A stretch of DNA of 64,000 nt from Oikopleura dioica. Its lineage: Eukaryota > Animalia > Chordata. A program made the translations under genes and the position numbers. Location: positions 8,370,001 through 8,434,000 of the forward strand of contig OU015568.1 of NCBI GenBank assembly GCA_907165135.1, read 5' to 3'. Of the stretch, positions 14,571 through 60,553 are shown one piece after another. The notes under the pieces are model-generated. The model did no database searches, was not told where the DNA came from, and was given only the letters and a program-made list of their open reading frames with translations. Numbering within the stretch: the first letter of the stretch is position 1; each line of letters begins with the position of its first letter.

Positions 14571-17170
<2,600 letters not shown>

Positions 17171-20306: not shown

Positions 20307-20397
20307 TGTCTAAAAAAGAATCGTTTGTTTATTAAGTCTCTAGATAAAGGATGTCCCAGCAGGTCCCTCACAAATCATCAGATCAAATAAAAACACG

Positions 20398-21674
20398 ATG
20401 AAGATGATGCTAACCGGAGTTATTTTCTCCTCTTGTTTTCTACCGAGTTGTGCCGAGATTTTCAATAGAGAGGAGATTTGTAAGGACAGGTTTTGCACCC
20501 TTTGCTACAACATCATCAACTACGAAGAGTCTACTGAATACAGTGAGTCACTTATTGAAGGATGTTACGAATTGCTGGACATGAGCAACTGCTGCAGCAT
20601 CTATATCAATGGACAAGGAAAAGTTCAAAATATTAATCTGCGTTGCTTGAGGAAAATAAGATATAGAATTCATTAGGAATTTTTCAAGGGTCTGTCATAT
20701 CAAGGGTGGTGTCGGATGATATGCAGGATCTTGAAGACCTGTTTAACAAAAAGCACGATGTCATCTCGAACAAGTAAGATAACAATTTACTCTACCAGCA
20801 AAAAGTGATTCTAGGACTGACTCATCGGAGTCGACTGAAGCAGATACAAGCAGTTCTGGCCAGAAGATTGAAGTTCCGTGGGGAAAACTCATTATTGGAT
20901 TTATGTGCGGAGCGATTTTTGCAGTCATACAAGCGGCTGTACAAGAATTTCTGGGTAGGCTTCATTTGCACAATAGCTTCATTTGCACAGAGCCTCATCT
21001 GCACAAGAGCTTCATTTGCACAATATGTGCAAAAGAGGCTTTTGTGCCAGTGAGGCTCTGTGCTAATGAGGGTTTCGATTCCGTGGGCTTTTTCAATGAA
21101 TGCTTATTGGCTGCCGACGATACTATTTTTCTTCGGAAAATTTTTCAAATAAGGTAAAAATCATTCTTAGCAGATCACAACTTATTTTGTGTTCTCTATG
21201 AAGTTCTTAGTTCATAGTATGAACCCTTCTTAATAATCAATCGATTTTAAACTCATTTGTGTTTATTATGAAATTGGTTCTGGCTGAAACTTACTGCTAT
21301 GTTCAAAAATGGAGATGAGTCAACGCGACATACTCGTAGTTTTCTGGCGTCTGGCAGACCTACTCCATACAATCAAACTTTTCATTTAACTCTTCCAGAT
21401 AATTTAATTACACCTATGTTTGACTAAAGATACAAAAAACTTGATAAAATAGTTGCGTCAAATAAACAAGTTTTAATTTTCTCAAAATATTTTTCAACAT
21501 TTCAATTTTTTTCATAAAAAATAAAATTTGACACTCATTTGTCCAAGAGCCTCACTGGCACAAAAGCCTCGTCTGCACAGAATGTGCAAATGAAGCTCTT
21601 GTGCAGATGAAGCTCTGTGCAAATGAAGCTATTGTGCAAATGAATCCTACCCAGAATTTCTCGATGAAAACTGA
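20398..21674 (+). CDS. Small Cys-rich type I membrane protein of unknown family; last exon interrupted by a MULE-type MITE
   Basis: Signal-like N-terminus, C-x4-C-x2-C...C...CC domain, predicted introns 20618-20676 (GA-AG) and 20774-20814, S/T stalk, TM WGKLIIGFMCGAIFAVIQAAV, empty-site ending QEFLDEN*. Confidence 0.6.
20953..21652. mobile_element. MULE-type MITE (700 bp)
   Basis: Termini GGGTAGG / CCTACCC; ~120 bp TIRs built of AGCTTCATTTGCACA repeats; 9-bp TSD AGAATTTCT at 20944-20952 and 21653-21661. Confidence 0.92.
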
Positions 21675-21763
21675 AAATGCAGATCATTTCTAAATCATAA
21701 TTTTGTCGAAAGTTTTTATTGAAAAGACTCTTTTCAAAAGAGAAAAAATATCGAACTGAGTTT

Positions 21764-24700
21764 TCAATATTTCCATGGCGGATTAAAAAGTCGTTTCTGA
21801 TAATAACCATCAAGATTTTTGTAGCGCTCGTCGAGATCGAAGACATCGTCGAAATCGAGTTTCTTAATAAAATGCTCCCCGTCTTTTCTTTTCAAATATG
21901 CGTTGTAATAGTTCGAGTATTCGTAAAGCGCTTCGTTCGGACTTATTCCTCTTCTTTTTGCGAAATATTCAATGTCGTTTTTCAGCTCTTGTCTGATCTT
22001 GTCTGTTTGGTACTGATAGTTGTTTCGCATGAAGTGGGTGCCGATGAAAATTAATGCAAGGACGAAGATAATTCTGACTGCACCAGGGATGGATAATTTG
22101 ATTTCAAAATGTTTTTCCATTTTTCGGAGGGATGGAATTCCAGTTTTTCCATTTTTTCCATTTTGGAATGAGAAATTATTCCATTTTCCACTTTTCCCAA
22201 AAAACGGTCTGCTCATTTTCGGAATATGGGATTTCCATTTTTTTGGGATTCCAGTTATTCCACAGTGAGAAATATGTATTTTTGGAAAATGGGATTCCAG
22301 TTATTCCATTTTTTAATTTCAGTTATTTCATTTTAAAACTCTGATCTGCAAAATTGGCGAAACATGGGATTTTCAAGTACTGAAGGGCCGTTTCCCCCCC
22401 TTCCCTGGCTTTAAATTTTAAATGGGCTTGACGGCCCGAAGGGCCGTTTCCCCCCCTTCCCTGGCTTTAAATTTTAAATGGGCTTGACGGCCCGAAGGGC
22501 CGTTTCCCCCCCTTCCCTGGCTTTAAATTTTAAATGGGCTTGACGGCCCGAAGGGCCGTTTCCCTTCCCTGGCTTTAAATTTTAAATGGGCTTGACGGCC
22601 CGAAGGGCCGTTTCCCCTTCCCTGGCTTTAAATTTTAAATGGGCTTGACGGCCCGAAGGGCCGTTTCCCCTTCCCTGGCTTTAAATTTTAAATGGGCTTG
22701 ACGGCCCGAAGGGCCGTTTCCCCTTCCCTGGCTTTAAATTTTAAATGGGCTTGACGGCCCGAAGGGCCGTTTCCCCTTCCCTGGCTTTAAATTTTAAATG
22801 GGCTTGACGGCCCGAAGGGCCGTTTCCCCTTCCCTGGCTTTAAATTTTAAATGGGCTTGACGGCCCGAAGGGCCGTTTCCCCTTCCCTGGCTTTAAATTT
22901 TAAATGGGCTTGACGGCCCGAAGGGCCGTTTCCCCCCCTTCCCTGGCTTTAAATTTTAAATGGGCTTGACGGCCCGAAGGGCCGTTTCCCCCCCTTCCCT
23001 GGCTTTAAATTTTAAATGGGCTTGACGGCCCGAAGGGCCGTTTCCCCCCCTTCCCTGGCTTTAAATTTTAAATGGGCTTGACGGCCCGAAGGGCCGTTTC
23101 CCCCTTCCTGGCTTTAAATTTTAAATGGGCTTGACGGCCCGAAGGGCCGTTTCCCCTTCCCTGGCTTTAAATTTTAAATGGGCTTGACGGCCCGAAGGGC
23201 CGTTTCCCCCCCTTCCCTGGCTTTAAATTTTAAATGGGCTTGACGGCCCGAAGGGCCGTTTCCCCCCCTTCCCTGGCTTTAAATTTTAAATGGGCTTGAC
23301 GGCCCGAAGGGCCGTTTCCCCCCCTTCCCTGGCTTTAAATTTTAAATGGGCTTGACGGCCCGAAGGGCCGTTTCCCCCCCTTCCCTGGCTTTAAATTTTA
23401 AATGGGCTTGACGGCCCGAAGGGCCGTTTCCCCTTCCCTGGCTTTAAATTTTAAATGGGCTTGACGGCCCGAAGGGCCGTTTCCCCTTCCTGGCTTTAAA
23501 TTTTAAATGGGCTTGACGGCCCGAAGGGCCGTTTCCCCTTCCCTGGCTTTAAATTTTAAATGGGCTTGACGGCCCGAAGGGCCGTTTCCCCTTCCCTGGC
23601 TTTAAATTTTAAATGGGCTTGACGGCCCGAAGGGCCGTTTCCCCTTCCCTGGCTTTAAATTTTAAATGGGCTTGACGGCCCGAAGGGCCGTTTCCCTTCC
23701 CTGGCTTTAAATTTTAAATGGGCTTGACGGCCCGAAGGGCCGTTTCCCCTTCCCTGGCTTTAAATTTTAAATGGGCTTGACGGCCCGAAGGGCCGTTTCC
23801 CCTTCCCTGGCTTTAAATTTTAAATGGGCTTGACGGCCCGAAGGGCCGTTTCCCCTTCCCTGGCTTTAAATTTTAAATGGGCTTGACGGCCCGAAGGGCC
23901 GTTTCCCTTCCCTGGCTTTAAATTTTAAATGGGCTTGACGGCCCGAAGGGCCGTTTCCCCTTCCCTGGCTTTAAATTTTAAATGGGCTTGACAAAGGCAG
24001 CGAACATTCACCTTATATGTTCGGAAAAATGGCTTCTTTCCCCAACCCCGCCCTCACCCATTCTTTATAAAAATCAAATTGGTTCTTGTTGAACAATTCT
24101 TATGGTTTATTTTTTAGATCCTTGTTATTTTTATTTATTTGAGTTCTGCCGAGGTAAGGGGTTCTCGAGCGCTAAGTATTCGCAATCAATAAGTTTAAAA
24201 TGAAAACGGAAAATGGAATCATTCCTTATTCCATTTTTCAAATCTGGATTTTTCGTTGCCCTATCAAATTCGGAATTCGGAATGAAAAATTATTCCTTTT
24301 TTCCATTTGAAAAAATAGGATTCCAAAATGGGATTCGTCTTCATTCCGATTTCGGCAAAATGGAAAAACTGGAATCCCGCCTTTTAGAAAAATGGAAAAA
24401 CTTTTTGAAATCAAAATATCCACCCCTGGACTGCACTCTCGCGGGCCGTATTCAATTCTGCTGCTGCTTTTCTGAAATGATTGGGAAATAGATTTTATTC
24501 GCGATTTTGTACGCAAGGACCTTCTACGATCTTTAAAATAATGCGTACCGGTACTTTCAGGTTTCATTTTATTCCGAGGTTTTGTTGGCGCTCCAACAGT
24601 TCCAAGTTGAAACTTTCAACGGTAATTGGTTACAAGTGAAACAAATCTTCTAAGAAAAATACATTAAAATGTAGCATTTTAATACTGGTGATCAGTCGTT

Positions 24701-25250
24701 TTGTTAATACGAAAGAAAAAGAAATATCTGTCTTCATTTTTAAATGAATACAGCGAGTTTGATGCCCTTATCCGCCTTCTTATTAAGAAAAATTTGAGCA
24801 AGAGCGACAATCTGTTTTCCAATCAAACCAAAATTTGGTTACCAAATACCTATTTTTGCAAGGTGCATATCAATCTTATCATTCTTATCGTCCGTTTATC
24901 TACTGCTATAGCACGGAACATCTGTTCATAAAAGCCCCTGTTGAGTTTTTTTCCAAAACCAACCTTTGAGCTTCCCGATGAGCGGCAACATGAGGGCTTT
25001 CCTCGCTTCTTCCCGCCGCTGCTCTGGAATACGGCCTTGTTCTCAGCTCTTCCAACACTTCATACGCTTCTTTCAACTCCTGGAACTTCGCTTCGTCTCC
25101 AGTAGGCATGTCTGGATGAAGAACACGGGATTTGTCCTTATACGCCTTCTTGAGTGCATCTTTAGACGGGTTCGCTTCAAGCTCTAGGATTCTGGCATTT
25201 TTGAATTTGCGAAAGAGGAATGATCTGGCACCTGAGAGCAGTTGCTTCAT
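21764..25250 (-). CDS. J-domain (DnaJ/Hsp40) protein with probable C-terminal TM; last exon interrupted by a hAT element
   Basis: LKKAYKDKSRVLHPD...KFQELKEAYEVL J-domain in ORF 24906-25250; the empty site gives an open frame KAAAELNTARESAVRIIFVLALIFIGTHF...PPWKY*. The exons linking the two parts are not resolved. Confidence 0.6.
22084..24428. mobile_element. hAT-family non-autonomous element (2345 bp) carrying a minisatellite
   Basis: Termini CAGGGATGGA / TCCACCCCTG (Ac-like CAGGGATG); 8-bp TSD GACTGCAC at 22076-22083 and 24429-24436; subterminal TTCCATTTT repeats in inverted arrangement. Confidence 0.92.
22382..23992. repeat. Minisatellite 1, ~30 copies of a 52-56 bp unit with an ACGGCCC-GAA-GGGCCGT hairpin
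   Basis: Unit TTGACGGCCCGAAGGGCCGTTTCCCCTTCCCTGGCTTTAAATTTTAAATGGGC; variation almost only in C-run length. Confidence 0.97.
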
Positions 25251-25428
25251 TCATGAAACGGTGGGAGATTCGTGGGAGGGTCAAACGAGTCCGATTTAGG
25301 CATATTCTGAGCATCTGAGAATGAATAGTAAATAATTTATTACATAATGAATTTACTGGATAAAAGATAGTACAGAAATAACGAAAAAGAATAAATGAAG
25401 AATAGGTGTATGTGACTTTTGATCATGT

Positions 25429-27069
25429 TTAGGTCTCTTTTGCGTTTGCGGATTCTTCTTGTGAGGAATTTTCGGTGTTTTTGGCTGTTGAATCTTTCGA
25501 TTCTTCGGCATCTTTTGGATCCTCCGGCTTCTTCTCGCCCTCTTCATCCGTTGGAAAAATGATATCCCCCGGTTCCGGCATGGGCGGTAGCCACTCTTCT
25601 TCCGGACAAAGCTTTTTGAAAAGATTTTCGGCCCAGGAAACAGCGTAATCGTAATCTGGGTCGAATTGAACTGTAGGAGAAACTTGTACGTTCGCTGGAA
25701 GATCGTTGAGGTGGACTTTGGAGTTGGTGAATTCCATTTGCCAAAGAGAATCGGTGGCGAACTTGGAAGAGAATTTATCGAGAGTGGGTTTGTGGCGGCA
25801 TCGGAGAGTGACGATTGATTTTCCTTTTGGTGTCGTGGAGGAACTACTGTCTGATTCAAAGGGTTGTGAATGAGAAGGGAAAAAATTAATTGGGTAACTG
25901 AGCGTTATAAGAGAACATAAACCCTTTTCCTAATGCGAGTCCCCAGATATGATGACCATCGACAATAGCAGTAATGATGCAATGATCTGGTTCTGGTCCA
26001 GAATCTTCCGCCAGCGCGAGTTTCTCATCCTTGATAATCTTCTTGAGGTCGTCGTCAGTCAAAATGATGATGACCTGATGAAAATCTTCCTCCGTGTTAT
26101 TGTGGTATGATTCGAGGTAGTTTACTTCTGCAATCATGTGATCGCATCGAACTTTATGGGGCGTTGAAGATTCTGGGACGGAGATCGAAAGCGATGTTAC
26201 GAGGTCATCTTCGAGAAAGATTTCTTTGAGAGGATATTCTAGCACCGTTATCCCGCCAAAAACCGCACACATCCGAGCAAATGCTTGAGCTAACTCTCCA
26301 GATCCATAAGAAGCGTAAAGAAAAGCAGAAGCTGCGGAATATTTTCCCAGGGAGCTGATGAATTTCTTGAGCTTAGCCAATCCGTCATAAAGTGATAAAT
26401 CCTCGGTGTTGGAGAAAATTATTGAAGATTTGACGAAGGATTTGAGCTTTTCTGTGAGCTTGAATCGCTCTAGAAACTGATCGAAAGTTGAAATTTCTTC
26501 GGATGGTTCTTCTTGCAGTGATTTGGTCAGGAAGTTCATCATTTTTCGCTTTTCAATGACTGTAACTCGTTTCGACGCGAAAAGATCAGCCCTGGAAGCT
26601 GGAACCGACATGAATTCATCTTCGTAGACCGTTTTTAGCGAAGCTACGTTTTTGAAGGATAAATATCTCGTTGCCTTTGACTGAATCAAAAGCTCCGTCA
26701 TTTTTCCAGTAGAAAATAAAGGGGAATTGTCGACGTTTATGTTGAAGCGGTACTGCTCGGTCCTGAGGAACATCTCAAACGTATCCCAGCATTCGGAAGG
26801 AGTGAATTTCAAGTTGGAAATTACTTTCGAAGATTCGCAAGAGGCCTTCCAGCTTTTGGCTTCTTTCATGTTGAAATTGCTCCATTCTGAGCCGTAGAAT
26901 GTGTTTCTGAAAAATAATGATAAATTTTGCAAAAATAATGATGAAGAACGCAGTACCGATCAATTTGCAGCACCGATTTTCCAATTCTAGCGCAGGCAGC
27001 TGCAAAAATCGAGCATGGAAGACCCGTCCCGCAAACAACAAAATCGACTTTCTTTGGCAACTCATCCAT
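25429..27069 (-). CDS. CHM: Rab escort protein (REP/CHM, GDI family)
   Basis: DFVVCGTGLPCSIFAAACARIGKSVLQID; YGSEW; VPASRADLFASK; YGSGELAQAFARMCAVFGG; C-terminal AENLFKKLCPEEEWLPPMPEPGDII. Confidence 0.92.
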
Positions 27070-46100: not shown

Positions 46101-49100
46101 TCTTTTCGACGTCTTTATTCATCCTCTTTTTCTTCCGATGTCAGTCGAGGTCACGTGGCCCCAAATGACCTCAATAAAAGCGAGATGAAAAAATTATATC
46201 TTTTCAAATGAACAAATTTTTCATATTTAAAATGAAAACCATAATAAAGTATAAAACAAGAATATTTTAAATTTTTATATCAATGGGTGTGGGTGGGGTT
46301 GGGGACGTAACTAGTATTGATAAACTCAGAGTTCCAGGCCTCTGTCAAGCCCCTTAAAATTAAAAGTCAAGGAACGGGGCTGAAACGGCCCGAAGGGCCG
46401 TCAAGCCCTTAAAATTAAAAGTCAAGGAACGGGGCTGAAACGGCCCGAAGGGCCGTCAAGCCCTTAAAATTAAAAGTCAAGGAACGGGGCTGAAACGGCC
46501 CGAAGGGCCGTCAAGCCCCTTAAAATTAAAAGTCAAGGAACGGGGCTGAAACGGCCCGAAGGGCCGTCAAGCCCTTAAAATTAAAAGTCAAGGAACGGGG
46601 CTGAAACGGCCCGAAGGGCCGTCAAGCCCCTTAAAATTAAAAGTCAAGGAACGGGGCTGAAACGGCCCGAAGGGCCGTCAAGCCCTTAAAATTAAAGTCA
46701 AGGAACGGGGCTGAAACGGCCCGAAGGGCCGTCAAGCCCCTTAAAATTAAAAGTCAAGGAACGGGGCTGAAACGGCCCGAAGGGCCGTCAAGCCCTTAAA
46801 ATTAAAAGTCAAGGAACGGGGCTGAAACGGCCCGAAGGGCCGTCAAGCCCCTTAAAATTAAAAGTCAAGGAACGGGGCTGAAACGGCCCGAAGGGCCGTC
46901 AAGCCCTTAAAATTAAAGTCAAGGAACGGGGCTGAAACGGCCCGAAGGGCCGTCAAGCCCTTAAAATTAAAAGTCAAGGAACGGGGCTGAAACGGCCCGT
47001 AGGGCCGTCAAGCCCCTTAAAATTAAAAGTCAAGGAACGGGGCTGAAACGGCCCGAAGGGCCGTCAAGCCCCTTAAAATTAAAAGTCAAGGAACGGGGCT
47101 GAAACGGCCCGAAGGGCCGTCAAGCCCCTTAAAATTAAAAGTCAAGGAACGGGGCTGAAACGGCCCGAAGGGCCGTCAAGCCCCTTAAAATTAAAAGTCA
47201 AGGAACGGGGCTGAAACGGCCCGAAGGGCCGTCAAGCCCTTAAAATTAAAAGTCAAGGAACGGGGCTGAAACGGCCCGAAGGGCCGTCAAGCCCCTTAAA
47301 ATTAAAAGTCAAGGAACGGGGCTGAAACGGCCCGAAGGGCCGTCAAGCCCCTTAAAATTAAAAGTCAAGGAACGGGGCTGAAACGGCCCGAAGGGCCGTC
47401 AAGCCCTTAAAATTAAAAGTCAAGGAACGGGGCTGAAACGGCCCGAAGGGCCGTCAAGCCCCTTAAAATTAAAGTCAAGGAACGGGGCTGAAACGGCCCG
47501 AAGGGCCGTCAAGCCCCTTAAAATTAAAAGTCAAGGAACGGGGCTGAAACGGCCCGAAGGGCCGTCAAGCCCCTTAAAATTAAAAGTCAAGGAACGGGGC
47601 TGAAACGGCCCGAAGGGCCGTCAAGCCCCTTAAAATTAAAGTCAAGGAACGGGGCTGAAACGGCCCGAAGGGCCGTCAAGCCCTTAAAATTAAAAGTCAA
47701 GGAACGGGGCTGAAACGGCCCGAAGGGCCGTCAAGCCCCTTAAAATTAAAAGTCAAGGAACGGGGCTGAAACGGCCCGAAGGGCCGTCAAGCCCTTAAAA
47801 TTAAAAGTCAAGGAACGGGGCTGAAACGGCCCGAAGGGCCGTCAAGCCCCTTAAAATTAAAAGTCAAGGAACGGGGCTGAAACGGCCCGAAGGGCCGTCA
47901 AGCCCTTAAAATTAAAAGTCAAGGAACGGGGCTGAAACGGCCCGAAGGGCCGTCAAGCCCTTAAAATTAAAAGTCAAGGAACGGGGCTGAAACGGCCCGA
48001 AGGGCCGTCAAGCCCCTTAAAATTAAAAGTCAAGGAACGGGGCTGAAACGGCCCGAAGGGCCGTCAAGCCCCTTAAAATTAAAAGTCAAGGAACGGGGCT
48101 GAAACGGCCCGAAGGGCCGTCAAGCCCCTTAAAATTAAAGTCAAGGAACGGGGCTGAAACGGCCCGAAGGGCCGTCAAGCCCTTAAAATTAAAAGTCAAG
48201 GAACGGGGCTGAAACGGCCCGAAGGGCCGTCAAGCCCTTAAAATTAAAAGTCAAGGAACGGGGCTGAAACGGCCCGAAGGGCCGTCAAGCCCCTTAAAAT
48301 TAAAAGTCAAGGAACGGGGCTGAAACGGCCCGAAGGGCCGTCAAGCCCCTTAAAATTAAAAGTCAAGGAACGGGGCTGAAACGGCCCGAAGGGCCGTCAA
48401 GCCCTTAAAATTAAAAGTCAAGGAACGGGGCTGAAACGGCCCGAAGGGCCGTCAAGCCCTTAAAATTAAAAGTCAAGGAACGGGGCTGAAACGGCCCGAA
48501 GGGCCGTCAAGCCCCTTAAAATTAAAAGTCAAGGAACGGGGCTGAAACGGCCCGAAGGGCCGTCAAGCCCCTTAAAATTAAAAGTCAAGGAACGGGGCTG
48601 AAACGGCCCGAAGGGCCGTCAAGCCCTTAAAATTAAAAGTCAAGGAACGGGGCTGAAACGGCCCGAAGGGCCGTCAAGCCCTTAAAATTAAAAGTCAAGG
48701 AACGGGGCTGAAACGGCCCGAAGGGCCGTCAAGCCCTTAAAATTAAAAGTCAAGGAACGGGGCTGAAACGGCCCGAAGGGCCGTCAAGCCCCTTAAAATT
48801 AAAGTCAAGGAACGGGGCTGAAACGGCCCGAAGGGCCGTCAAGCCCCTTAAAATTAAAAGTCAAGGAACGGGGCTGAAACGGCCCGAAGGGCCGTCAAGC
48901 CCTTAAAATTAAAAGTCAAGGAACGGGGCTGAAACGGCCCGAAGGGCCGTCAAGCCCTTAAAATTAAAAGTCAAGGAACGGGGCTGAAACGGCCCGAAGG
49001 GCCGTCAAGCCCCTTAAAATTAAAAGTCAAGGAACGGGGCTGAAACGGCCCGAAGGGCCGTCAAGCCCCTTAAAATTAAAAGTCAAGGAACGGGGCTGAA

Positions 49101-51528
49101 ACGGCCCGAAGGGCCGTCAAGCCCTTAAAATTAAAAGTCAAGGAACGGGGCTGAAACGGCCCGAAGGGCCGTCAAGCCCTTAAAATTAAAAGTCAAGGAA
49201 CGGGGCTGAAACGGCCCGAAGGGCCGTCAAGCCTCTTAAAATTAAAAGTCAAGGAACGGGGCTGAAACGGCCCGAAGGGCCGTCAAGCCCTTAAAATTAA
49301 AAGTCAAGGAACGGGGCTGAAACGGCCCGAAGGGCCGTCAAGCCCCTTAAAATTAAAAGTCAAGGAACGGGGCTGAAACGGCCCGAAGGGCCGTCAAGCC
49401 CCTTAAAATTAAAAGTCAAGGAACGGGGCTGAAACGGCCCGAAGGGCCGTCAAGCCCCTTAAAATTAAAAGTCAAGGAACGGGGCTGAAACGGCCCGAAG
49501 GGCCGTCAAGCCCCTTAAAATTAAAAGTCAAGGAACGGGGCTGAAACGGCCCGAAGGGCCGTCAAGCCCTTAAAATTAAAAGTCAAGGAACGGGGCTAAA
49601 ACGGCCCGAAGGGCCGTCAAGCCCCTTAAAATTAAAAGTCAAGGAACGGGGCTGAAACGGCCCGAAGGGCCGTCAAGCCCCTTAAAATTAAAAGTCAAGG
49701 AACGGGGCTGAAACGGCCCGAAGGGCCGTCAAGCCCTTAAAATTAAAAGTCAAGGAACGGGGCTGAAACGGCCCGAAGGGCCGTCAAGCCCCTTAAAATT
49801 AAAAGTCAAGGAACGGGGCTGAAACGGCCCAAAGGGCCGTCAAGCCCCTTAAAATTAAAAGTCAAGGAACGGGGCTGAAACGGCCCGAAGGGCCGTCAAG
49901 CCCTTAAAATTAAAAGTCAAGGAACGGGGCTGAAACGGCCCGAAGGGCCGTCAAGCCCCTTAAAATTAAAAGTCAAGGAACGGGGCTGAAACGGCCCGAA
50001 GGGCCGTCAAGCCCTTAAAATTAAAAGTCAAGGAACGGGGCTGAAACGGCCCGAAGGGCCGTCAAGCCCTTAAAATTAAAAGTCAAGGAACGGGGCTGAA
50101 ACGGCCCGAAGGGCCGTCAAGCCCTTAAAATTAAAAGTCAAGGAACGGGGCTGAAACGGCCCGAAGGGCCGTCAAGCCCCTTAAAATTAAAAGTCAAGGA
50201 ACGGGGCTGAAACGGCCCGAAGGGCCGTCAAGCCCCTTAAAATTAAAAGTCAAGGAACGGGGCTGAAACGGCCCGAAGAACACCATATATGGTGCATCCT
50301 CTATTGTAGCGCCGAACCATTTTTGGTTTTCATTATTTTATCAAAAGTTTTCATCGGGCGAGATCAGAGCTCGGCAGATGGCAAGAACTTGATGGAGATT
50401 TTCGTCGACGTGGAAGGTCTGATTCTATATTTGTAAAAGAAGAGGTTGAAAAACTGATAGCGCAGTTTTGTTCAGCTCGTTGAGACGAGTCGAATGGTGG
50501 GTCTAACACTTGATAACTCCAAGGATTGACCGATTTTTTATTTGTTGGAAAAGGCGAAATTGGGGAGACATGGATGAAATGACTCAAGATCATTTTCATG
50601 ATGAAAATGGGCCAAACTTATTTTGTGGTGCCGTATTTCGACCCCGTTTAGTCGCTGCCCTTTCCTTTCCGAAATTTTCATTTTGAAAATGGGATGAGCT
50701 TTATTTCCAGCGCCTGATTTCGAGGCCGTTTTGTCGCTGCGCGTTCCTGTTTTCGTCTCAAATTTCAGCCGATTTTTAATCACCAAACACCATCAAATAA
50801 ATATGCATTTTACCGGCGATTCCCTAATCAAAAACACAAATAAAAACACATGAAGTTCAGGCCTGGAGTGATATATTTATCAGAAAAATTTGAAATTCCA
50901 TGCACGGATGAGTCAGAAACTGCGCGCAAAGTTTTGCTATTTTTAGACACTAAATGAGCAATAACTTCCATTATACTGACTCAAATTCCATGAAATCTAT
51001 ATCAAAATGCTTCTTTTTCTCACTTAACAAGATCGACTTGAAAATTCAAAAAATTTTTTGCCATGTCACAAAATTTTGAAACTTCCCTAAGCGAGAGAGC
51101 CCAACCTACTCGCCCACGCAATTTACCTCAGCCCTTCCTCTCCCGATTTGAATCCTAGGTCCATCGTGTTTTCTTTGTCCACGGAAATATCTTTTGCAGC
51201 AGAGTTATTGGCGGACGAGTTAGAGGTGTAATCATCGAATTCTAGCGCAATCAGTGATTAGTAAAAATCAACTCAAGTCAATCAAGCATTTTATGGATGA
51301 TCGAAAAATGATTGTTTCTCAAAATAGTTCAATTTTGTTTGAATATATTTTGAAATCAAAACCCAAAAAAGACTCACCTTTGACCTCATTTTTCGGCGCG
51401 AAAGAAACTCGTGACTTTCTTCTCTCGGATCGCCGGACAGGTCCGTTTACTTCCGACTTGAGAACGCTTTTTCGCGGCTTTTTCCTCTGACCTGTCCGGG
51501 GACTGCTGGCAGCTCTCTTCTCCGACAT
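37171..51528 (-). CDS. KNL1: Kinetochore scaffold KNL1/Spc105; exon 2 interrupted by a 10.76 kb composite transposon
   Basis: N-terminal RKSVLKS and RRKSRVSFAPKNEVKEF (SILK/RVSF motifs); disordered region with M[DE]xT-like repeats; coiled coil (38098-38358); C-terminal domain consistent with RWD. The frame is continuous across the empty site (KENTMD-QESPSMF). Confidence 0.8.
40459..41731. mobile_element. MULE-type MITE (1273 bp) inserted in the left TIR of the outer element
   Basis: Termini GAGAGAGGCGATTTTCTGGCAG, inverted arms ~330-360 bp; 9-bp TSD TGTAGGTTT at 40450-40458 and 41732-41740. Confidence 0.92.
42035..45158 (+). mobile_element. Putatively autonomous Mutator-like (MULE) transposon, 3124 bp
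   Basis: Imperfect TIRs GGT.GTA.G.GGTCATGTGGGTAC with arrays of the palindrome GTGGGTACnnGTACCCAC; TSD CCCTGAAA at 42027-42034 and 45159-45166 (extendable to 9-10 bp); encodes a transposase. Confidence 0.88.
42315..44528 (+). CDS. MULE DDE transposase with FLYWCH-like Zn finger; exons 42315-42386, 42429-43404, 43645-44528 (643 aa)
   Basis: GT-AG introns join one stop-free frame of 1932 nt; motifs QADGT...FDQL, TDSE...CFFH, TSNVVERFN; LVIDDG...YQC...C...HTC. Confidence 0.85.
45252..51087. mobile_element. PIF/Harbinger-type foldback element (5836 bp) inserted in the right TIR of the outer element
   Basis: GGG...CCC termini, TAA TSD (45249-45251, 51088-51090); near-identical ~815 bp inverted arms 45252-46068 and 50276-51087; no transposase. 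Confidence 0.88.
46344..50278. repeat. Minisatellite 2, ~70 copies of a 55-56 bp unit with the same hairpin core as minisatellite 1
   Basis: Unit GAAACGGCCCGAAGGGCCGTCAAGCCC(C)TTAAAATTAAAAGTCAAGGAACGGGGCT. Confidence 0.97.
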
Positions 51529-51975
51529 ATCCGCTTCACTCTGCAAATTTGCCTCAATTTTCTGAAAATAAAAATCTCAAGTCTGGTGCCAAGGCGGAGC
51601 GAAAAAGCAGAATTCAAACGACTCTCTTAAAATGGCGCGCGCTGATTGGCTGCGACGCTGAACTTGGCGCACACTTTGCGATTTCTCTTGTTCTCGCGAT
51701 ATTATCTAAAAAGCAGGAAAACGGTTTGAACCTGAAGATTGTCTGGCCGTTTATCGATACATCAAATTTCCAGAATATTCTAGAAAATGCTTCTTTGAAA
51801 AAATCATTGAACATTCTCTTTTATGGCCGAAAACTCAACTTTCAGACACAAACCGAAATTAAAACTCATCATTATTTCACTAAACATCTTTTCTCAATTC
51901 TTTCCACTTCTCTCTACCCTGATTGGCCGGCTTCATCATCTCTAAATTTTCCTAATTTTCAGAAATCGTCGAAAA

Positions 51976-54632
51976 ATGGCGAGTAAAAGAGCATTCCTTC
52001 AAGAAAACCTGGAAGAGGAGCAAGAAGAATCATCTCAAAAACGACTCTTTGAAGAACCGACCCCAGAAATTCAAACCTCAAAAAAGGGTGGAAAAGAAAA
52101 TGAAAAAGATAGATTTGGACCGACTCCGGTTCCGAGTGGAAAAGAATTTCTCAGAGACGAAAATAAGGTTCAAATGAGAACTGCTCATATAAGGTACCTT
52201 TGTCCTTTCGTTTTTCGCTTCATCCTTTTTTTCTTCAGGCTACAGAAAGACTTGAAAACGATCAACAAACGGGCGAAAAATGCGTCGCAAAAGGCCGAAA
52301 TGCTGAAAATTCTTGAGCCGACAGAACATGGAGCGATGAAGAAAACGGGCAAAATCTATTCTCAGAAAGATATTCTAAAAGTGGCGGATGTCCAGACGAT
52401 GCAGAAGAAGTTCTCGCTCGATTTGGACATGGGCCCGTATATTGCTCGATACGACGCTAGGTAAACCTTGAAAAAGGCTCTTCCCACCCTTATTATCTCT
52501 ATTCTAGCGGAAGACATCTTCTCCTGGCTGGAGAGCTTGGTCACGTGGCCATGATCGATCATTACACAAAAATGCCAAAATGCGAGTTTTCCGTAAAAGA
52601 AAAGATTTCGGTCGGCTCATTTTTTGCCTTCTTTTTCTGAATTCAAATTTCTAGGACGCGATTTTCCTCCAAAATGAAAAGCTAATGGCCGTAGCGCAGA
52701 AAAAGTGGACTTATGTTTACGATAATCAGGGGACAGAAATTCACTGTTTGAAGAAAACGGATAGAGTGAACAAGATGAATTACTTGCCCTATCATTTTCT
52801 ACTCGCTTCAATTAACAGACTAAGTTAGAAAATGCCAAGAAGATCACCTTTATTCATAATTTGCTTTAGATTATCTCTCCTACATCGACATATCAATCGG
52901 AAAAGAAATCTACTGCAAGCGAGTGAGCGAAGAAGGAAGTCTAAATGTCATTTGCAACAATCGAACGAACGGGATCATCCATCTTGGCCACACGACGGGA
53001 ACTGTCACTCTTTGGTCGCCAAATAGCGAGAAATTCGTTGCAAAGATGTTGTGCCACAAAGTAAGCTTTTCCTTTTTTTCTGATCATCAGCTTCGAATTT
53101 TAGAGTAATGTTATTTCCACGGCTGTTTCAAGCGACGGAAAATATATGGCGACTTCAAGTCAAGACGCGTCGCTGAAAATTTGGGATTTGCGAACTTGGA
53201 AGTGTTTGAGCACGAAAAGATTGCCTCGAGGAGCGCATCAGCTACAGTACTCGCAGAGAGGATTGCTGGCGGCTTCGTTTGCCAATGTTGTGGAATTGTG
53301 GAAACGTAAGTTACTAAGAGAGAAAAGTGTGGTTGATCTAGGCTGGTTCGATCTTGTATCAGATTTTGCGCCCCGCTGAGGGAGGTCAAGTGTAGCGCCC
53401 TCTTTTGGCCATAGTTGTTCATTAAACATAGGTTTCTATGCTTTTACAAACAAAGATATGAAAATTTTTGAAATGCATCACGAGCATGTGGGGTGTCGTC
53501 ATCGTCAGTAACGACTGTTACTTGTATGAAAAAATAAATAAAATCTTGATCAATATTTCTGACTTATTTGATTTTGCAGATCCTTGGGAAGAAGAATGCA
53601 CACAGCCAATAATGCAGTACAAAACGGCTCTCACTCCAACCACCCTTGATTTCTGTCCGTACGAAGACGTGCTCGGAATCGGCTCCAAAAAGGGCTTCGA
53701 AAGCATCCTCGCTCCTGGAGCGGGAGAACCAAATCCAGACAGCTGGCAGTACAACCCCTTCCAGACTAAAAAGCAGCGGGCGGAGACGGAAGTTAGAATG
53801 TTACTGGAAAAGGCGCCGGCGGATACGATTTGTTTGGATCCGAACTTGCTGGCGAAATTGGACGAAAGCGCTGCTCAGGGTGGCTATTTTGGATTTGGGG
53901 GTTAGTTGGAATTGGATTGGATCCAATCCAATAAGGTTTGGATGGAATTTGGATGGCCAGGGTACCGGATTTTGTTGGGAAAAATTGGGCAATTGGGGGA
54001 AATTGGGGAATTGGATCCAATAAAAAATATATCGCTAAACTATGCAAAGAAGGGTCATTTTCATGATTAAAATGAACAATTTCGGATAAAAAATCATTGT
54101 TTTGACTCTGTTGATCCTCCTTTCGGATAAAAACTAACTGTTTCGCTTCTTTTCAAAGTACTAAAAGCCTTGGAAAAATTGGAAATCCAATTGGATCTAA
54201 TTGGAATTGGGGATTTTTGGGGAATTGGGTAATAATTGGATTGGGTTGGATTTTGGATGGATAGCTTGGAGTCAAAATTTATTGGATGGAAATTGGATGG
54301 CCAGACCCCAAAATTTTGTCCAAAATAGCCACCCTGGCGCTGCTCAAGGTAGTTTCTCAATGATTCTCGGAGTTTCTGACTTTTGAATTTCAGAATTCGA
54401 CGAAGAACAATTGAAACGAGTTGGATTCAAGCGGGATAGAAAGTTCGAACCTCGAGTACGAAAGCGAGGAAAAGGCAAAACCGGAGCGAAGGAAGCAAGA
54501 AAGTCGAAAATGCGAGAAGCTGCGTTCAAGAAGCATTTGCTGGCAAAGAGGGAAAAAGAAAGCAAACAGACGATCGTCAAAAAGGAGCAGGCGAAGAATG
54601 TTCTGGCCAGATTCATGAAGAAAGACAACTGA
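51976..54632 (+). CDS. WDR46: WD-repeat protein WDR46/Utp7 (SSU processome)
   Basis: KAEMLKILEPTE; KKFSLDLDMGPY; IIHLGHTTGTVTLWSPN; FCPYEDVLGIG...PGAGEPNPD...NPFQTKKQRAETEVRMLLEK (BING4CT-like). Confidence 0.93.
53876..54336. mobile_element. hAT MITE (461 bp) inserted 4 nt before the end of a WDR46 coding exon
   Basis: Perfect TIR CAGGGTGGCTATTTTGGA / TCCAAAATAGCCACCCTG; 8-bp TSD GCGCTGCT at 53868-53875 and 54337-54344; internal TTGGA repeats. Confidence 0.95.
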
Positions 54633-54764
54633 AAGAAATGACTGTTTTTCTGTTCTGTTCTTTTGAATTAATTCAATAAATTGAATGCAGAAAAGAATGA
54701 AAAAGAAAACTTCATATGATTTTATCACTCAAACTTTTTTTAAAGATCTTGATTGGGTCCAAAA

Positions 54765-55121
54765 ATGCTCGAAAAGTACGAAAAAGCGTGGAATTTCGGC
54801 GTTCAAAAGCGGAAAAAGCCCGAGACTCCCGAAAACTCAGACTCCGAAACCTCCGAAAATGAGAATGATTTGCCTGAGAAGCCCGAAAAAGCGCCAAAAG
54901 AAAAAGTATCGATGGCTGCTCACATGACTAGGCCGCTTGAAAGTCAAGAGTTGTTGCTGCTCTTGTGTTTGATTCTTCTGATAGCTATTTTTCTGTTTGT
55001 ATTTTTTAACCCCGATTTGATGGAAAATCCGCTCAAAGAGGATCGTCAGAAATCTCAATTACCGACCCTTCCGGAATCCGAACCTGACTCGCTCTATGAA
55101 AACTTGCAACAGAACTTGTAG
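54765..55121 (+). CDS. Small single-TM protein of unknown function (118 aa)
   Basis: ATG-initiated ORF with an acidic N-terminal half and the hydrophobic stretch LLLLLCLILLIAIFLFVFF, between WDR46 and TSSC4. Confidence 0.5.
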   Translation: MLEKYEKAWNFGVQKRKKPETPENSDSETSENENDLPEKPEKAPKEKVSMAAHMTRPLESQELLLLLCLILLIAIFLFVFFNPDLMENPLKEDRQKSQLPTLPESEPDSLYENLQQNL

Positions 55122-55170
55122 AATAGAAATAATGCTGGTGACGATTTTCAACCTTTTTTCTTTTCAGAAT

Positions 55171-55949
55171 ATGGCCGACACAGAGACAAAATCATCAGAA
55201 TACAATTCTAAGAAATCTGCACTAGAATCCGCTTTCGACGCAGCAATCTCATCTGGTTCAAAGACCAGACTGGGCGTCAGAGAAGCCCCGTCCTTGGAAG
55301 GTCAGTGAAAGGTCAAAAGTACAGCGAATGTGAATTTCTGACTAGAACTGGACAGATTTTCAAAGAAAGAGTGCCGCTCAATCAAGGAGCACCAGTTCGA
55401 GAGGCCGAATTCGAGACCTTGCAGAAAGCGCCGCGCTCCGCGAATTCCATCTCACATCAAAAATCCCGAAAAATTCAAAAAGGTACTTTTTTCCGTCGCC
55501 GTTGTATTCACATGCTTTTAGTATGACTTGAGCGATGTATCTTTGAGCTCATCACAAGATAATAAAAAAGCAGCTTTATCTTTTCTCGCTGAAATGCGCG
55601 ATAGAAAGGAGCCGAAGGAAGATCCCTACGACGAAGAACGCGATGGAAAGCTCGTTTTCAAGAAACCCACACTTTCTTCAAAGAACAAATCAAAATCAAC
55701 CTCAAAGTCAAAGACATCCAAGACTTCAGGTAAATTAGTGTTTAGCAAACTTATGCCTATTTTTCAGATCGACAAGGTGCAGAAATCACGCATTTTGAAC
55801 ACGACTGGCGAGAAGAACTGGAGGCGAAAGCTGCCTCAAGTCTCGTCGAAAAATCAATCGAAAGCAATGAAACTCCCGAGAAAACGACTTTTGCCAAGAA
55901 AACTCGACGGAAAAACATTCGAAAACGGACTGAATCTGACGATGAATAG
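55171..55949 (+). CDS. TSSC4: TSSC4 (U5 snRNP chaperone)
   Basis: Spliced PSHIKNPEKFKK-YDLSDV...DNKKAALSFL matches the TSSC4 signature. Confidence 0.8.
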
Positions 55950-56010
55950 TTTAATAAATAATGACGATATTTTTTGAAATATTTTTATTCGAAAATGATT
56001 GAGAAACTTT

Positions 56011-57136
56011 CTACACTTTTGTTTTCTTTCGCAGTGTTCTCGGATAAAAGTAATTTCCTTTTCCAGTGACAACGTCAAATTTCATTTCTTCTTCGTTAGC
56101 TTCAATCAGCTTAAATTATTGGTTACTGATTGTTTCGACAAAATAATTACCAAAATAGCAAGTCGTTCACCCTTCAGAACTGAGAAGTAATCGAAGTCAG
56201 CTTGAGGATTCAGTTCGTGGTTCATATTTTTCAGGGAAATGTTGATTGCCTTGCCCATCCCAGTGACGAAGTAATGGATCCTTTTGCCCAGGAAGTGTTG
56301 CATATTGTGGTCGTGTCCGCAGATGTAAGCATCAGCATGATGTTTTTCCAGTAGAGGCTTAAAACTTTGTAATCATAAGCCATTAAACGAAGGCTACCTG
56401 TAAATATCGAATGATCTTTTCGGTTGGCCCGTGATTTCCGACGCTGTAGATTGGATGGTGACCGCCGACGATGCAGTAATCAGCGTAGCAGTTTTCAAGC
56501 TCTTTGTCGATCCACTGATTCTGTTCTTCTTGATAGTCTCGATCTGGGTATTCAGGAAGTTTCTTCACGTTTCCCATCATGATTTCCGTGTCAATCATCA
56601 TGATTTTGACGCTGAACTTTGGCTTCTCAATCTAAAACCCGTTTTCAGAACCCAGAAGTATTGTTGAGTCATACCGTGAAGGAGTACCATAAATCCGGAA
56701 ACTTGAAATTTGTCTCTCTTTGATGTGAATAAATAACCTGAAAACTGCGTTTTGGGCAGTTGGGTTACCGTCTGACCTGCGCTGTAGCATTTCGCCTGTG
56801 ATCATGATTCCCAAGACATTGGTAAAAGTCTAGATTTTTGATGTTTTCTCTTTCGGACGCGAACCCGTAGATATTCTCATAAGTTCCATTGAATCTGATA
56901 TCATCGATGTTGTAAACTCCATCCCAATAAAAATTGTCTCCGAGGGAAAGCATGAAGTCACAATCTCTCTCGCCGCAGAGTTTATCCATGCTTGCTGCTC
57001 CCCATTCTTGGGAATAACGGTTTCCTCCTGGATAAATGACTGGGATAGGATCGGCTCCGCCCCAATCGCCTATTGCCGGAAAGCGGACGTAATCGTCTGA
57101 TGCAAAAACAAGTGATAAGAGAGAGAAAGCTCTCAT
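56011..57136 (-). CDS. ACP5: Tartrate-resistant (purple) acid phosphatase
   Basis: GDWG, LGDNFY, LGNHDH, GHHP and CGHDH metal-ligand motifs; signal peptide. Confidence 0.93.
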
Positions 57137-57286
57137 TTTCTCAATTTTTGGACAAAACTGATCGGTTTTTTCATCGAGTGTCGAGCACCTGACATATTCT
57201 CATGAATTCCAAAGTTACCCATGAAGTCACAAATCAGTCTGGAATAAACTAACAGCCAACTTTGACCTTCTTCAGTTAGAAAAATA

Positions 57287-59163
57287 ATGGAACGCCGGTG
57301 AGAAAAAATCATAGAGGACAGATATCAATTGTTTTTGGGATTTTATGCAAATCTTTCCATTTTTCTCTAGAATACGGTCCCGTTGTTGTTCTGCGGGACA
57401 ATGTCCGCGAAGCCCTCTTCAGTTCGAAAATAGCCAACCCGCCTGCAATGCCTACCAGGAAAGTGATGAGAATTTGACTTTTAGATTTAATTTTTTTTGA
57501 AATCAAGACAGAAGGTTTCCCTCTTTAGTTTTTTTCTAAGATTTTGATCATGAGAAAATGATCATGCTACTGTAGATCGATTTCTTCTGCGGATAAAACT
57601 GAAAAGATTTCTCATCCCAAAAAAAGGGTTCCCCTCCGGAACAAGGTGCGTGCGCGATGCCTAGAAGATCGTTATTACGAAGCCGCAAAGAAAATTCAAG
57701 TCTATGTCAATGGAGATCAGCATAAACGACCAAAGCTGTTCACAGTGCCCAAGAGCAAGGTCAAGGTTCTCACTTTTTAACCCTCGCCGTGTAACATGGT
57801 CAATTTTTAGGGCCCAGAAGCAATGGAAGTTTTTATGACACAAATGACAGATTCTTTGCGCAATAATTTTCATCTACGTTCTGCGATCAGGCATTTATTT
57901 ACACCAGAGGGCGGCACCCGCATCAAGAAACTGGAGCAACTCAAGGATAGAGGCGTATACATCGCATCAACTAAGGTAATCAGCGGATATAAGACCAAGA
58001 AGCTGATATTTTTCCTAGGCTAAATTGGAGAAGGCAGATTATTCAAAGAACCACAGCCCCCCAAAGAAGCCCCGACTGCGAAACATCCACACTACTTACT
58101 CAAAACTGCGTCGAGACTCAGAGATCTATGTCAAGCCCGTCAAGCACTGGGATAAGGCTGCTGAGCATTACAGGAAGACGCCTACCGATCTTCGCTCGCA
58201 CTACAAGGATAGTCTTTCCTACTATCAGACTATCAAGGTAAAACTCAATTCTAAAGCCCAATCTAACGACTTTCAACTAGGAGAGCACGAAGCCTCACAT
58301 CAAAACTCTCTACATCTTCGCCAATGGAGACACTCACCGATACTACTCCGTCATTCTCCGCGGAAAGCTCGCCAGCGATGAGAAGGATACCGAGTGCTTC
58401 CAGAAGATTTTGAACCAAATCTCGACCACCGTTGGTCGAGCCCAGACCCGAGATCGAGGATCTCTTGCCGTCCGACGACTTTACAACCTTGACGTAAGTT
58501 TTAATCAATGAACTCTTTTCTCAACTCATTTCAGGGCAAACGAGTGAAGACCCAGCGAGGATTGCACGATGGCATGGCCTACATCTGCGTGGGAGATACG
58601 AAGCTCAAACGACTTCCGTATGGAAGCGAGCATTCGATGAACCCCCAATGGAAGTCTACTATCAAGCCAATGCGAACGACTAGCGGCGCTATTAGGTAAA
58701 GATAAAGCGATCTTATTATTCTAATAATCTTTTCAGCGTGATGGGAGACAGCCCAAGAACACCACGAACTCCCTACCCGGACTCTCCCTTGCCCCCGATC
58801 AAGACGCCTGTCCCCCAGATGGCTACGCGAACGATGAACTCCCCGCGCCCGCTCAAGACACCAGTTCAGCCGTCGGCGAAGACCACCTATGCTGAAGCCC
58901 CTGTTCCCAAGAAGGCGAACTCGCGCACACCAAAAGCATTGAAGGCACCAAACAAGGGAATTCCAAAGGGCATCGCAAGCAACATGCCCATCATCAAGAA
59001 GAAATCTAACCCAAAAGTCGGCTCCAAGCATCAGATTCTCCCCGACTTGAACCAGATGAGAACCGAAGCGGAGGAATTTGACGCCTCCCAAATTGAAACC
59101 GCAGATGAGCAAACCTCATCAAGGGTATCGGTAGGACAAGACAATTTCAATGAGGAAGAATGA
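57287..59163 (+). CDS. Tandem doublecortin-domain protein (DCDC2-like)
   Basis: KKIQVYVNGD...IRHLFTPEGGTRIKKLEQLKDRGVYIA and KTLYIFANGD...VRRLYNLDGKRV...LHDGMAYICVG; Pro-rich tail. Confidence 0.85.
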
Positions 59164-59551
59164 GCGGCATAAAAAGGCTTATTTTCACTGTACATACTCA
59201 GTTTTGGATATATAATCAATACAGAAATATATATATTTTAAAAACTCATGAGATTAAGAACTGTATTTTACAAAAAAAATTAAATACAGTTCTTAATCAA
59301 TTTGTCTCTTTAATTTGTCTCTCGGCGGCTCTGATGAAGCTGATTTTTTTTTTCTGGAATCTCGAGAATTGTTTTGGTCAATTAGCGGAGAATCATCAGT
59401 TTTGATAATTGAGCGTAAGCGAAGGGAAAGTCACGCACTTTCCCAGTTTTATGTGTTGTCGCTAAGCAACGAATTTTCTCAAATAAGGTATTAATTAGCT
59501 GCTTTTCTCGTAAACTACTGTTGAGATAGGTGCAGAAGAATAATTCGCCAT

Positions 59552-60547
59552 CAGAGTTCGAAATCTGAAAAGAAATAGCGACTGCCACTGCCAAGCGACT
59601 GCCAGCTTTTTTAAAATGGCGACTGCCACTGCCAAGTGACTGCCAGCCTTTTTTAAATTGCAACTGCCACTGCCAAGTGACTGCCGAAATCGGCAGCTGC
59701 CAGTTGACAGCAAAAAACTGCCGATTTCGATACTTTTTGTAAAATTTTTTAAAGTCAAACTAAGTTCAAAACAGTCGTTTTGACAAATTGGCAATATAAA
59801 AGAAACGTTATCATAAATAAAAATGTCTCTTTTGATAAGAAAAATGGGGGGGTACTGAATTGTGCCGCCCTGCGCCGCCCTGCGCCGCCTTGCGCCGCCC
59901 TGCGCCGCCCAGCGTCGCCCGGTCCGAAACCATCCGGCTCTCTTCCGCCCCAACCATGACCTAAGAAACAATCCTGAACAAGAGCGAGAGTTGGGCCCCG
60001 CCAACCCAATGAGTTCTCTACCAGAAAATGCGCGCGTAAGGGCCTCTGGCCCGTGGCGTGCTCAATTAATTAGTGATTTTATTCCAAAATCGGACTTCGG
60101 TTGAGAATTACTCTACTGGCACCCTAAATTATGGGTTTACCTTTTTTTAATTTTAAGACAATATAAATATGTCAAAATAACTAAGTTGACACGAAAATCT
60201 AAATTTCCCGCTTTTGAAAGACAAAATATCTTCGGATCCGGTAAGACCGGCCGACGCTGGGCGGCGCAGGGCGGCGCAGAGCGGCGCAGGGCGGCGCAGG
60301 GCGGCACAATTCAGTGTCTCCCGAAAAATGGAATAAAATAGGTCTCGGGAGCAAAATTTGGTCATTTACGCTATTTTTCTTTGTCATTCTAGAAAGAAAA
60401 ACTAATATCTTTTGAAGTGGCAGTCGGTTGGCAGCTGCCAGTAACTGCCAGTCCTTGAAAAGTGTAACTGCCACTGCCAAGTGACTGCCAAAATTGGCAG
60501 CTGCCAGTGGCAGTCGTGGCAGTACTGCCAGCAAATTTCGAACTCTG
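59552..60547. mobile_element. hAT MITE (996 bp) inserted at the STYXL1 start codon
   Basis: TIR CAGAGTTCGAAAT / ATTTCGAACTCTG; 8-bp TSD TTCGCCAT at 59544-59551 and 60548-60555; ACTGCC sub-repeats. Confidence 0.92.
59847..60322. mobile_element. Nested MITE with GC-rich (GCGCCGCCCT)n inverted arms
   Basis: ACTGAATTGTGCCGCCCTGCGCC inverted at both ends; GGG termini; direct repeat GAAAAATG(G) at 59839 and 60323. Confidence 0.75.
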
Positions 60548-60553
60548 TTCGCC

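Follow-up and report, generated by a model that had tools for sequence, protein, structure and literature searches.

Transposon insertions in four coding exons of Oikopleura dioica and their likeness to introners

The introners of the algae Micromonas pusilla and Aureococcus are non-autonomous transposons in exons, recognisable by terminal inverted repeats (TIRs) and target-site duplications (TSDs), in which one splice site comes from the element and the other from the duplicated target (Huff, Zilberman and Roy 2016, as outlined in PMC11282704). Non-canonical introns derived from miniature inverted-repeat transposable elements (MITEs) are described from the larvacean Fritillaria borealis, in which they bear traces of TIRs and TSDs and in which transposon insertions are neutralised by a permissive U2 spliceosome (Henriet et al. 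2019, as outlined in PMC11282704 and PMC13326754). The subject here is a 64,000-nucleotide window of the Okinawa reference genome of Oikopleura dioica, OKI2018_I69 (GCA_907165135.1; contig OU015568.1, the PAR chromosome or pseudo-autosomal region; positions 8,370,001 to 8,434,000), in which five elements with TIRs and TSDs, designated E1–E5, were found, four of them in coding exons. A further precedent is maize, in which exon insertions of Ac/Ds (a hAT element) and of Mu are reportedly spliced from transcripts, yielding leaky alleles (work of Wessler and colleagues, late 1980s to early 1990s); cryptic donors in the termini of Ds and Mu are said to join nearby acceptors, with most or all of the element removed and partial function left.

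All five elements, which an earlier note on this DNA had proposed at the coordinates given below, have TIRs and perfect TSDs, the ends having been read directly and checked by script. One is a MITE resembling Mutator-like elements (MULEs), with a TSD of 9 bp, and four are hAT-like, with TSDs of 8 bp; each family is present as a single copy within the window. The broken coding exons belong to the genes of a small membrane protein (E1) and a J-domain protein (E2), to a KNL1-like gene (E3), and to WDR46 (E4), and comparison with other sequences bore out both the coding location and the conservation of the host genes that the note had claimed. The interpretation preferred here, at about even confidence, is that these are young, segregating insertions whose outcomes differ gene by gene, and not a tuned or coordinated frame-restoring system. 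Five young non-autonomous cut-and-paste transposons (one MULE-type and four hAT-type) would have come to lie on the haplotype that became the Okinawa reference, and would have landed in coding sequence because some 70% of the neighbourhood DNA is coding. In the 21-kb annotated neighbourhood, coding sequence makes up about 9.4 kb of the 13.6 kb of non-transposon DNA (~70%), and four of the six non-nested elements lie in it: an unremarkable share, equal to the expectation for unselected insertion. Ordinary transposon polymorphisms in coding sequence are alike in their perfect TSDs, in the empty alleles found elsewhere, and in an exonic share that matches the coding density; the difference is that E4 and E1 carry ready canonical splice signals and could be neutral.

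E1 resembles the algal introners in that its predicted donor, G/GTAGG (a slash marks the splice position or the point of interruption throughout), derives from the TIR and its acceptor, ...CCTACCCAG/, from the first two bases of the TSD, the length of which is a multiple of three (3n). The algal elements, however, form hundreds to thousands of near-identical, demonstrably spliced introns with short TSDs (3 nt in M. pusilla), whereas in the present window each family has a single copy, the TSDs are 8 or 9 bp long, the insertions are polymorphic, and the splice paths are predicted only. The earlier note had invoked the geometry of one TIR-derived and one TSD-derived splice site, which stands for E1; three of the four cases depart from it. 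Fritillaria belongs to the same animal class as O. dioica, but its introns, which are short, fixed, and very numerous, mostly have AG-AC or AG-AT termini, in contrast to the candidate O. dioica paths, which are GT-AG or GA/GG-AG and belong to elements of 0.46–10.8 kb that still segregate. Fritillaria-type termini (AG-AC or AG-AT after an exonic TAC) occur in none of the candidate paths of E1–E4. The closest mechanistic precedent for the splicing proposed for E2, E3, and E4 would be that of maize Ac/Ds and Mu, with the difference that this is a plant in which such splicing is usually imperfect, gives several products, and is seen as a buffering of mutation and not as a route to fixed introns. 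As they are known from sequence, the O. dioica cases are polymorphic exonic insertions, and they would form a new member of the introner-like class only if spliced. A literature search that did not include Denoeud 2010 and Henriet 2019 turned up no account of O. dioica introns derived from hAT elements or MULEs, and the main text of Gozashti et al. 2022 leaves Oikopleura unmentioned.

The cleanest case is E4, in which a GT from the transposon end falls in the same codon phase as the donor that it would replace. E4 is a 461-bp hAT-like MITE at 53876–54336, flanked by the TSD GCGCTGCT at 53868–53875 and 54337–54344; its TIR is CAGGGTGGCTATTTTGGA and its ends read CAGGGTGGC...GCCACCCTG. The family is many-copy, with a k-mer depth of 11,000–26,000 vs ~150 in the flanks (roughly 75–170x). 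The host gene, WDR46/UTP7 (BING4), lies on the forward strand at 51976–54635, its WD40 exons being followed by the BING4CT exon at 53580–53879 (BING4CT domain, Pfam 6.9e-30), and the element sits 4 nt ahead of the splice donor that follows this domain. With the hAT end CAGG/GTGG, a canonical GT would fall in precisely the phase of the old exon, and therefore the old intron would only be lengthened. The merged intron predicted for the filled allele runs on the forward strand from 53880 to 54393 (ctcagg/GTGGCT to tttcag/AATTCG); the old donor, caag/GTAGTT, lies at 54349, and the old acceptor is retained. Joining the TIR GT at 53880 to the old acceptor at 54393 would give the same protein as the empty allele, with CAG for CAA, both of which encode Gln. 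The filled allele spliced at the TIR GT is thus predicted to show the junction ...GCTGCTCAGG-AATTCGAC, and the empty allele ...CAAG-AATTCGAC. A second in-frame GT lies within E4 at 53901 (+21 nt), ahead of the first stop; read-through without splicing would give ...AAQGGYFGFGG and then a stop. E4 is probably harmless or neutral by way of this replacement of the donor by one from the TIR.

E1, a 700-bp MULE-like MITE at 20953–21652, has the TSD AGAATTTCT at 20944–20952 and 21653–21661, and TIRs of 116 nt that are 94% complementary, start GGGTAGGCTTCATTTGCACA, and are made of 17-nt subrepeats. Its host gene, g10774, lies on the forward strand at 20404–21674, with an annotated coding sequence of 20404–21427 that ends inside the MITE, and encodes a small protein with a signal peptide, a Cys-rich part, and a transmembrane (TM) segment. 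In a protein search with one match, the exon beside E1 showed 99% identity to protein P0001, which is Oidioi.mRNA.OKI2018_I69.PAR.g10774. The element lies 4 codons ahead of the stop and touches only the last 3 codons. The empty-allele reading is ...AAVQEFLDEN followed by the stop TGA at 21672–21674, and the ENA metagenome contigs L007 and L008, from a lineage ~88% identical, have the empty site and read ...AAVQEFLPVN before the stop.

Two outcomes can be envisaged for the filled allele of g10774, with the TIR GT as the probable donor in both. On a predicted canonical path, ttctgg/GTAGGC ... CCTACCCAG/aatttc, the TIR GT (G/GTAGGC) would be joined to an AG in the duplicated target site, adding three residues (+9; ...QEFLEFLDEN before the stop). 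Alternatively, an acceptor internal to the MITE would create a new short C-terminus, as in the published model of P0001, which joins the TIR GT at 20955 to ctcttccag/AT, with an exon from 21399, and ends ...QEFL/DNLITPMFD at the stop 21425–21427; it differs from the +9 path. The predicted junctions are TTTCTGG-AATTTCTCG for the +9 path, TTTCTGG-ATAATTTAA for the published model, and ...GAATTTCTCGATG for the empty allele. Since the last three residues are affected under either path, E1 is probably tolerated. The RNA fold computed for E1 (-287 kcal/mol, z -20) is a hairpin whose ~120-bp stem reaches into the near-palindromic TSD, the proposed donor being paired in it with the proposed acceptor; the internal acceptor of the published model falls in an unpaired loop. 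Such a stem could either bring the splice sites together or hide them. The fold of E4 is less exceptional (z -3.5).

E2 and E3, by contrast with the harmless or tolerated cases, are probably damaged alleles: E2 would lead to a truncated J-domain protein and E3 to a frameshifted or truncated KNL1-like protein, both being carried heterozygously. E2 is a 2345-bp hAT-like non-autonomous element at 22084–24428, with the TSD GACTGCAC at 22076–22083 and 24429–24436, the TIR CAGGGATGGATAATTTGATTTC, and the ends CAGGGATGG...CCACCCCTG; a satellite of 30 units of 53 nt occupies 22382–23992 within it. Its host, on the reverse strand at 21764–25314, would encode ~221 aa if uninterrupted, comprising a DnaJ domain (Pfam, 1.6e-11), a TM segment, and a C-terminal domain. 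The insertion lies in exon 3, which starts at 24471, and splits ...ARES/AV/RIIF.... The Bergen orthologue P0010 (221 aa) is continuous across this site (...HREAQR/KAAEELNTAREGGIRIIFVL...), and the exact empty site is present in the ENA metagenome contigs L007 and L008. A separate small gene with a 14-nt first exon was considered at E2 and ruled out, as the Bergen orthologue puts the exon in the J-domain gene.

The published model of the J-domain gene is short (123 aa, from 25314 to 24411) because it reads into E2: read on the minus strand, it continues for five codons into the TIR (...ESAVQGWIF) and stops at the TGA 24413–24411 inside it. The 108-residue part that holds the TM segment and the C-terminal domain (21767–22090) is left unannotated; both the Bergen orthologue and contigs from the wild show it conserved. 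Two canonical paths are predicted through E2, one of -6 with GT and AG both within the TSD (junction GCGAGA-TCAGAA), and one of +3 with the TIR GT ccaggg/GTGGAT and an AG formed by the end of the TSD and the flank (junction CCAGGG-AATTAT); GG donors would open further paths of 0, +6, and +9. An in-frame ATG contributed by the hAT end (MEKHFEIKLSIPG-AVRIIF...) could also start an N-terminally truncated product. The gene models of the OKI2018_I69 assembly, a Nanopore-based assembly of a single male, were made with AUGUSTUS and RNA-seq hints (PMC8008620). Those published for the E1 and E2 hosts are weak evidence, and no proof, as to the real transcripts, and neither backs the frame-restoring paths.

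E3 is a 10,757-bp composite hAT-like element at 40402–51158, with the TSD GTCCATCG at 40394–40401 and 51159–51166; its TIRs are ~72 nt long and start CTAGGATTCAAATC (CTAGGATTC), and three elements are nested inside it. The host gene lies on the reverse strand at 37500–51546, its 3′ limit being approximate. Exon 1 encodes SVLK and RVSF motifs ~18 residues apart, with MELT-like repeats and a coiled coil downstream, and by these motifs alone the gene is termed KNL1-like (KNL1/Spc105-like). Pfam and Atlas returned nothing usable for its exons, a search with a KNL1-like exon retrieved just exon fragments of other lineages, none of them a full-length annotated protein, and the contig of P0002 ends short of exon 2. 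It is exon 2 that E3 breaks (...DKENTMD/QESPSMFNMS...). The predicted in-frame paths (+12, 0, -6) use GA or GG donors only; the sole canonical donor, a strong gctgag/GTAAAT 32 nt inside the TIR, would give +40, +67, or +29, all off frame. Damage would be avoided only if the weak GA/GG donors beat this strong GT within the TIR. The junction GGACCTAG-CGATGGAC is predicted for the +12 path and GGCTGAG-CGATGGAC for the +40 frameshift.

The nested elements are a MULE-like MITE at 40459–41731 with the TSD TGTAGGTTT; an element at ~42046–45140 that bears open reading frames (ORFs) and is flanked by a 9- to 10-bp repeat, CCCTGAAAGG; and a third at ~45245–51086 with perfect inverted arms of ~0.8 kb and a satellite of 71 units of 56 nt. 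The second has 38-nt subterminal repeats (GTGGGTACCAGTACCCAC...) and ORFs at 42609–43412 and 43803–44528 (267 and 241 aa), in which Pfam found no transposase domain even at E<=10. One ORF segment, ...VVERFNRRIKEAL..., presumably recalls the C-terminal motif of Mutator/IS256 transposases. The satellite of the third element (46344–50278) and that of E2 (22382–23992) are ~85% alike in reverse complement; therefore, different hAT-like elements carry one and the same satellite.

Empty alleles were found for all four exonic insertions. For E3 and E4, reads from the DNA runs X1–X3 and the RNA run X24 were placed on 51092–57000, a stretch that takes in the whole of E4 and, of E3, the donor side. At E3, contigs of X1 and X3 each reach 51160 from ...GACATGTTGAACATGGACGGAGATTCCTGC, which is the left E3 flank (~40372–40394) with two SNPs, and thus represent an exact empty site on another haplotype. 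At E4, contigs of X1 and X2 join 53869 to 54339, skipping 469 bases, that is, the element plus one TSD, and the Tara Oceans contig L005 (~95% identical) has the same empty site (...GAAAGTGCTGCTCAAG/GTAGTTTC...). The three DNA runs differ from the reference by up to ~4% in places and therefore come from other animals; since E3 and E4 are empty in this DNA, both are still polymorphic within or near the Okinawa lineage. The empty sites in the ENA contigs indicate that the E1 and E2 insertions are at least derived. An estimate of filled-allele frequency from the contig depths of X1–X3 was rejected, the break at 54339 being equally explained by an SNP in the TSD. At full depth, X1 holds a haplotype ~4% off the reference in the 5′ region of WDR46 (51478–52613; 33 differences in 854 nt), which shows very high diversity within the lineage.

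Only two reads of X24, an oligo-dT RNA-seq run of 2026 with the same species label, fell on these 5.9 kb, which hold several housekeeping genes, and they did so at 90–95% identity. The run probably comes from another cryptic O. dioica lineage; species labels are no guarantee of the right one. Among JGI metagenome contigs, a scan for the WDR46 exon end, with A or G at the diagnostic base, gave three matches, all bacterial and due to chance, and the protein collection held no transcript-derived proteins for the host genes of E1–E4. Mapping of RNA to this locus also holds a trap: mRNA of an empty allele, placed on the filled reference, looks as if the element and one TSD had been cut out exactly. 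Splicing is proved only by junctions that keep bases of the element or TSD, or by linked SNPs (CAGG vs CAAG for E4, GAC vs GAG for E3).

The net length changes that the earlier note gave for E1, E2, E3, and E4 (+9, -6 or +6, +12, and 0) are arithmetically correct, and canonical GT-AG in-frame paths, with the GT from TIR or TSD, exist in E1 (+9), E2 (-6, +3), and E4 (0). How far such paths arise by chance was gauged by a simulation in which the same elements, in both orientations, were set at random positions in the window's long ORFs; an in-frame outcome meant at least one stop-free path with a net change of at most 12 in either direction and with sites in the TSD (+/-3 nt) or the element's terminal 10 nt. 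With G-N donors, the in-frame rates for E1–E4 were 0.64, 0.51, 0.93, and 0.71 (product 0.22), and with GT donors only they were 0.33, 0.15, 0.18, and 0.28. The note had itself cautioned that permissive donors make chance paths easy to find, and the rates of 0.51–0.93 per element agree; an excess of frame preservation among the four is not upheld, all four together lying within chance (0.22), and frame preservation with permissive donors is not significant.

Several points nevertheless weigh against the reading of young insertions with gene-by-gene outcomes. A canonical GT-AG in-frame path is present in three of the four elements, and the joint chance that both E1 and E2 have a GT-only path is ~0.05, for a test picked after the paths had been seen; the canonical paths of these two are mildly unusual. 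It may be compatible with the sequence that E2 and E3 are spliced by way of GA/GG donors, or that all four elements are spliced. WDR46 is a conserved gene of ribosome biogenesis, and the KNL1-like gene is probably essential; the two hits lie 14 kb apart on one haplotype and would make a double recessive lethal if neither were rescued. The three nested insertions, moreover, hint that E3 may have been resident for some time. An explanation that we regard as unlikely would go further, in that a permissive single spliceosome would routinely remove hAT and MULE MITEs by way of a donor in the TIR (GT, GA, or GG) and an AG supplied by the TSD, by the flank, or by the intron that follows, so that host genes stay functional and introns are being born. 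It would account for in-frame paths in all four elements, canonical in E1, E2, and E4, for the classic geometry of E1 (a TIR site plus a TSD site, with a 9-bp, 3n TSD), and for the hits on two presumably essential genes on one haplotype; non-GT/AG introns make up about 11% of the total in O. dioica (PMC8008620), and MITE-derived introns are documented in F. borealis (review PMC11282704). The frame arithmetic, however, is within chance, and a hAT element, with its 8-bp TSD and a ...CCCTG end that lacks a 3′ AG, is therefore not inherently 3n. The strong E3 donor GAG/GTAAAT shifts the frame, the E2 host is truncated in its published model, and the 120-bp TIR stem predicted for E1 would bury both proposed sites; nor would reads of apparent exact removal be proof, as empty-allele transcripts look alike. 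The exonic share at the level of the coding density, the polymorphic or young state of the insertions, and the different acceptor that the published model gives E1 likewise point away from a tuned system. A tentative proposal, with the balance of probability clearly against it, is that hAT and MULE MITE termini with usable donors (CAGG/GT, GG/GTAGG) bring about intron gain or reshaping in Okinawan O. dioica: the donor of E4 would be replaced with the protein unchanged, E1 would form a new intron or terminal exon, and E3 would be removed by GA-AG splicing.

It is likewise improbable that all four are plain loss-of-function or altered alleles, rare, recessive, and recent, on the assembled haplotype of one male. 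Such alleles would be in keeping with the empty sites in every readable data set, with stops that follow 5 to 12 codons of read-through in E2, E3, and E4, and with the truncated annotation of the E2 host. Yet E4 has a canonical TIR GT in identical phase and a second in-frame GT before the first stop, so that rescue, partial at least, could hardly be avoided; E1 alters the last 3 codons only, and two presumably essential knockouts on one haplotype would be costly. That the insertions are artefacts of assembly or haplotype merging, and not truly in these genes, is very improbable indeed. The assembly is Nanopore-based and from one individual (PMC8008620), and the filled junctions are known here from it; but five independent, perfect 8- or 9-bp TSDs match the single copy at the empty site, which counts against an artefact because mis-assembly creates no target-site duplications, and the MITE families are many-copy in three other DNA runs. 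Young insertions with separate outcomes, probably neutral in E4, tolerated in E1, and damaging in E2 and E3, remain the preferred account.

The assignment of the elements to hAT and MULE types, also made by the earlier note, agrees with their termini. Short hAT TIRs begin with a YARNG-type motif. The 8-bp TSDs GACTGCAC, GTCCATCG, GCGCTGCT, and TTCGCCAT are perfect at both ends, and the TIR starts CAGGG (E2 and E4) and CAGAG (E5) match the motif, CTAGG of E3 being one base off; the copies of E2, outer E3, E4, and E5 are without a long ORF. E1 and the nested MITE at 40459–41731 show the MULE features of a 9- to 11-bp TSD (AGAATTTCT and TGTAGGTTT, respectively) and TIRs of ~100 nt or more, with arms of 116 and ~111 nt that are 94–98% complementary. 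E5, a 996-bp hAT-like element at 59552–60547 with the TSD TTCGCCAT at 59544–59551 and 60548–60555, lies outside coding sequence, directly 5′ of the ATG of the next gene (60554–60556); as the note had it, the element duplicates a start-codon context, the ATG being rebuilt at the right TSD copy only. An independent scan, in which 10-nt TIRs had to be flanked by exact TSDs of 8 or 9 bp, picked up E3, the nested MITE, E4, E5, and another element at 110–640 (531 bp; TSD GTATATGT; ends CTGGCCTCGGAATC...), which adjoins a 227-nt inverted-repeat pair at 640–1195. Just 3′ of WDR46, a 118-aa single-exon ORF with a TM segment lies on the forward strand at 54765–55121. Marine contigs from ENA and JGI conserve it at 65–94% identity, whereas no OKI2018_I69 protein of similar length occurs in the protein collection, and it is therefore possibly an unannotated gene.

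Users of the OKI2018_I69 gene models are affected by these insertions, as the J-domain gene is annotated in truncated form owing to E2. O. dioica is known for extreme intron turnover, the source of which is unsettled. If the elements are not spliced, the window illustrates the number of damaging insertions that one reference haplotype can bear. If, on the other hand, exonic MITEs are spliced, segregating intron births would be open to genotyping, crossing, and assay in a laboratory chordate; and if intron gain or reshaping by hAT and MULE termini, the proposal termed tentative above, were true, it would mark the first time that a polymorphic introner-like process involving several superfamilies has been documented in an animal.

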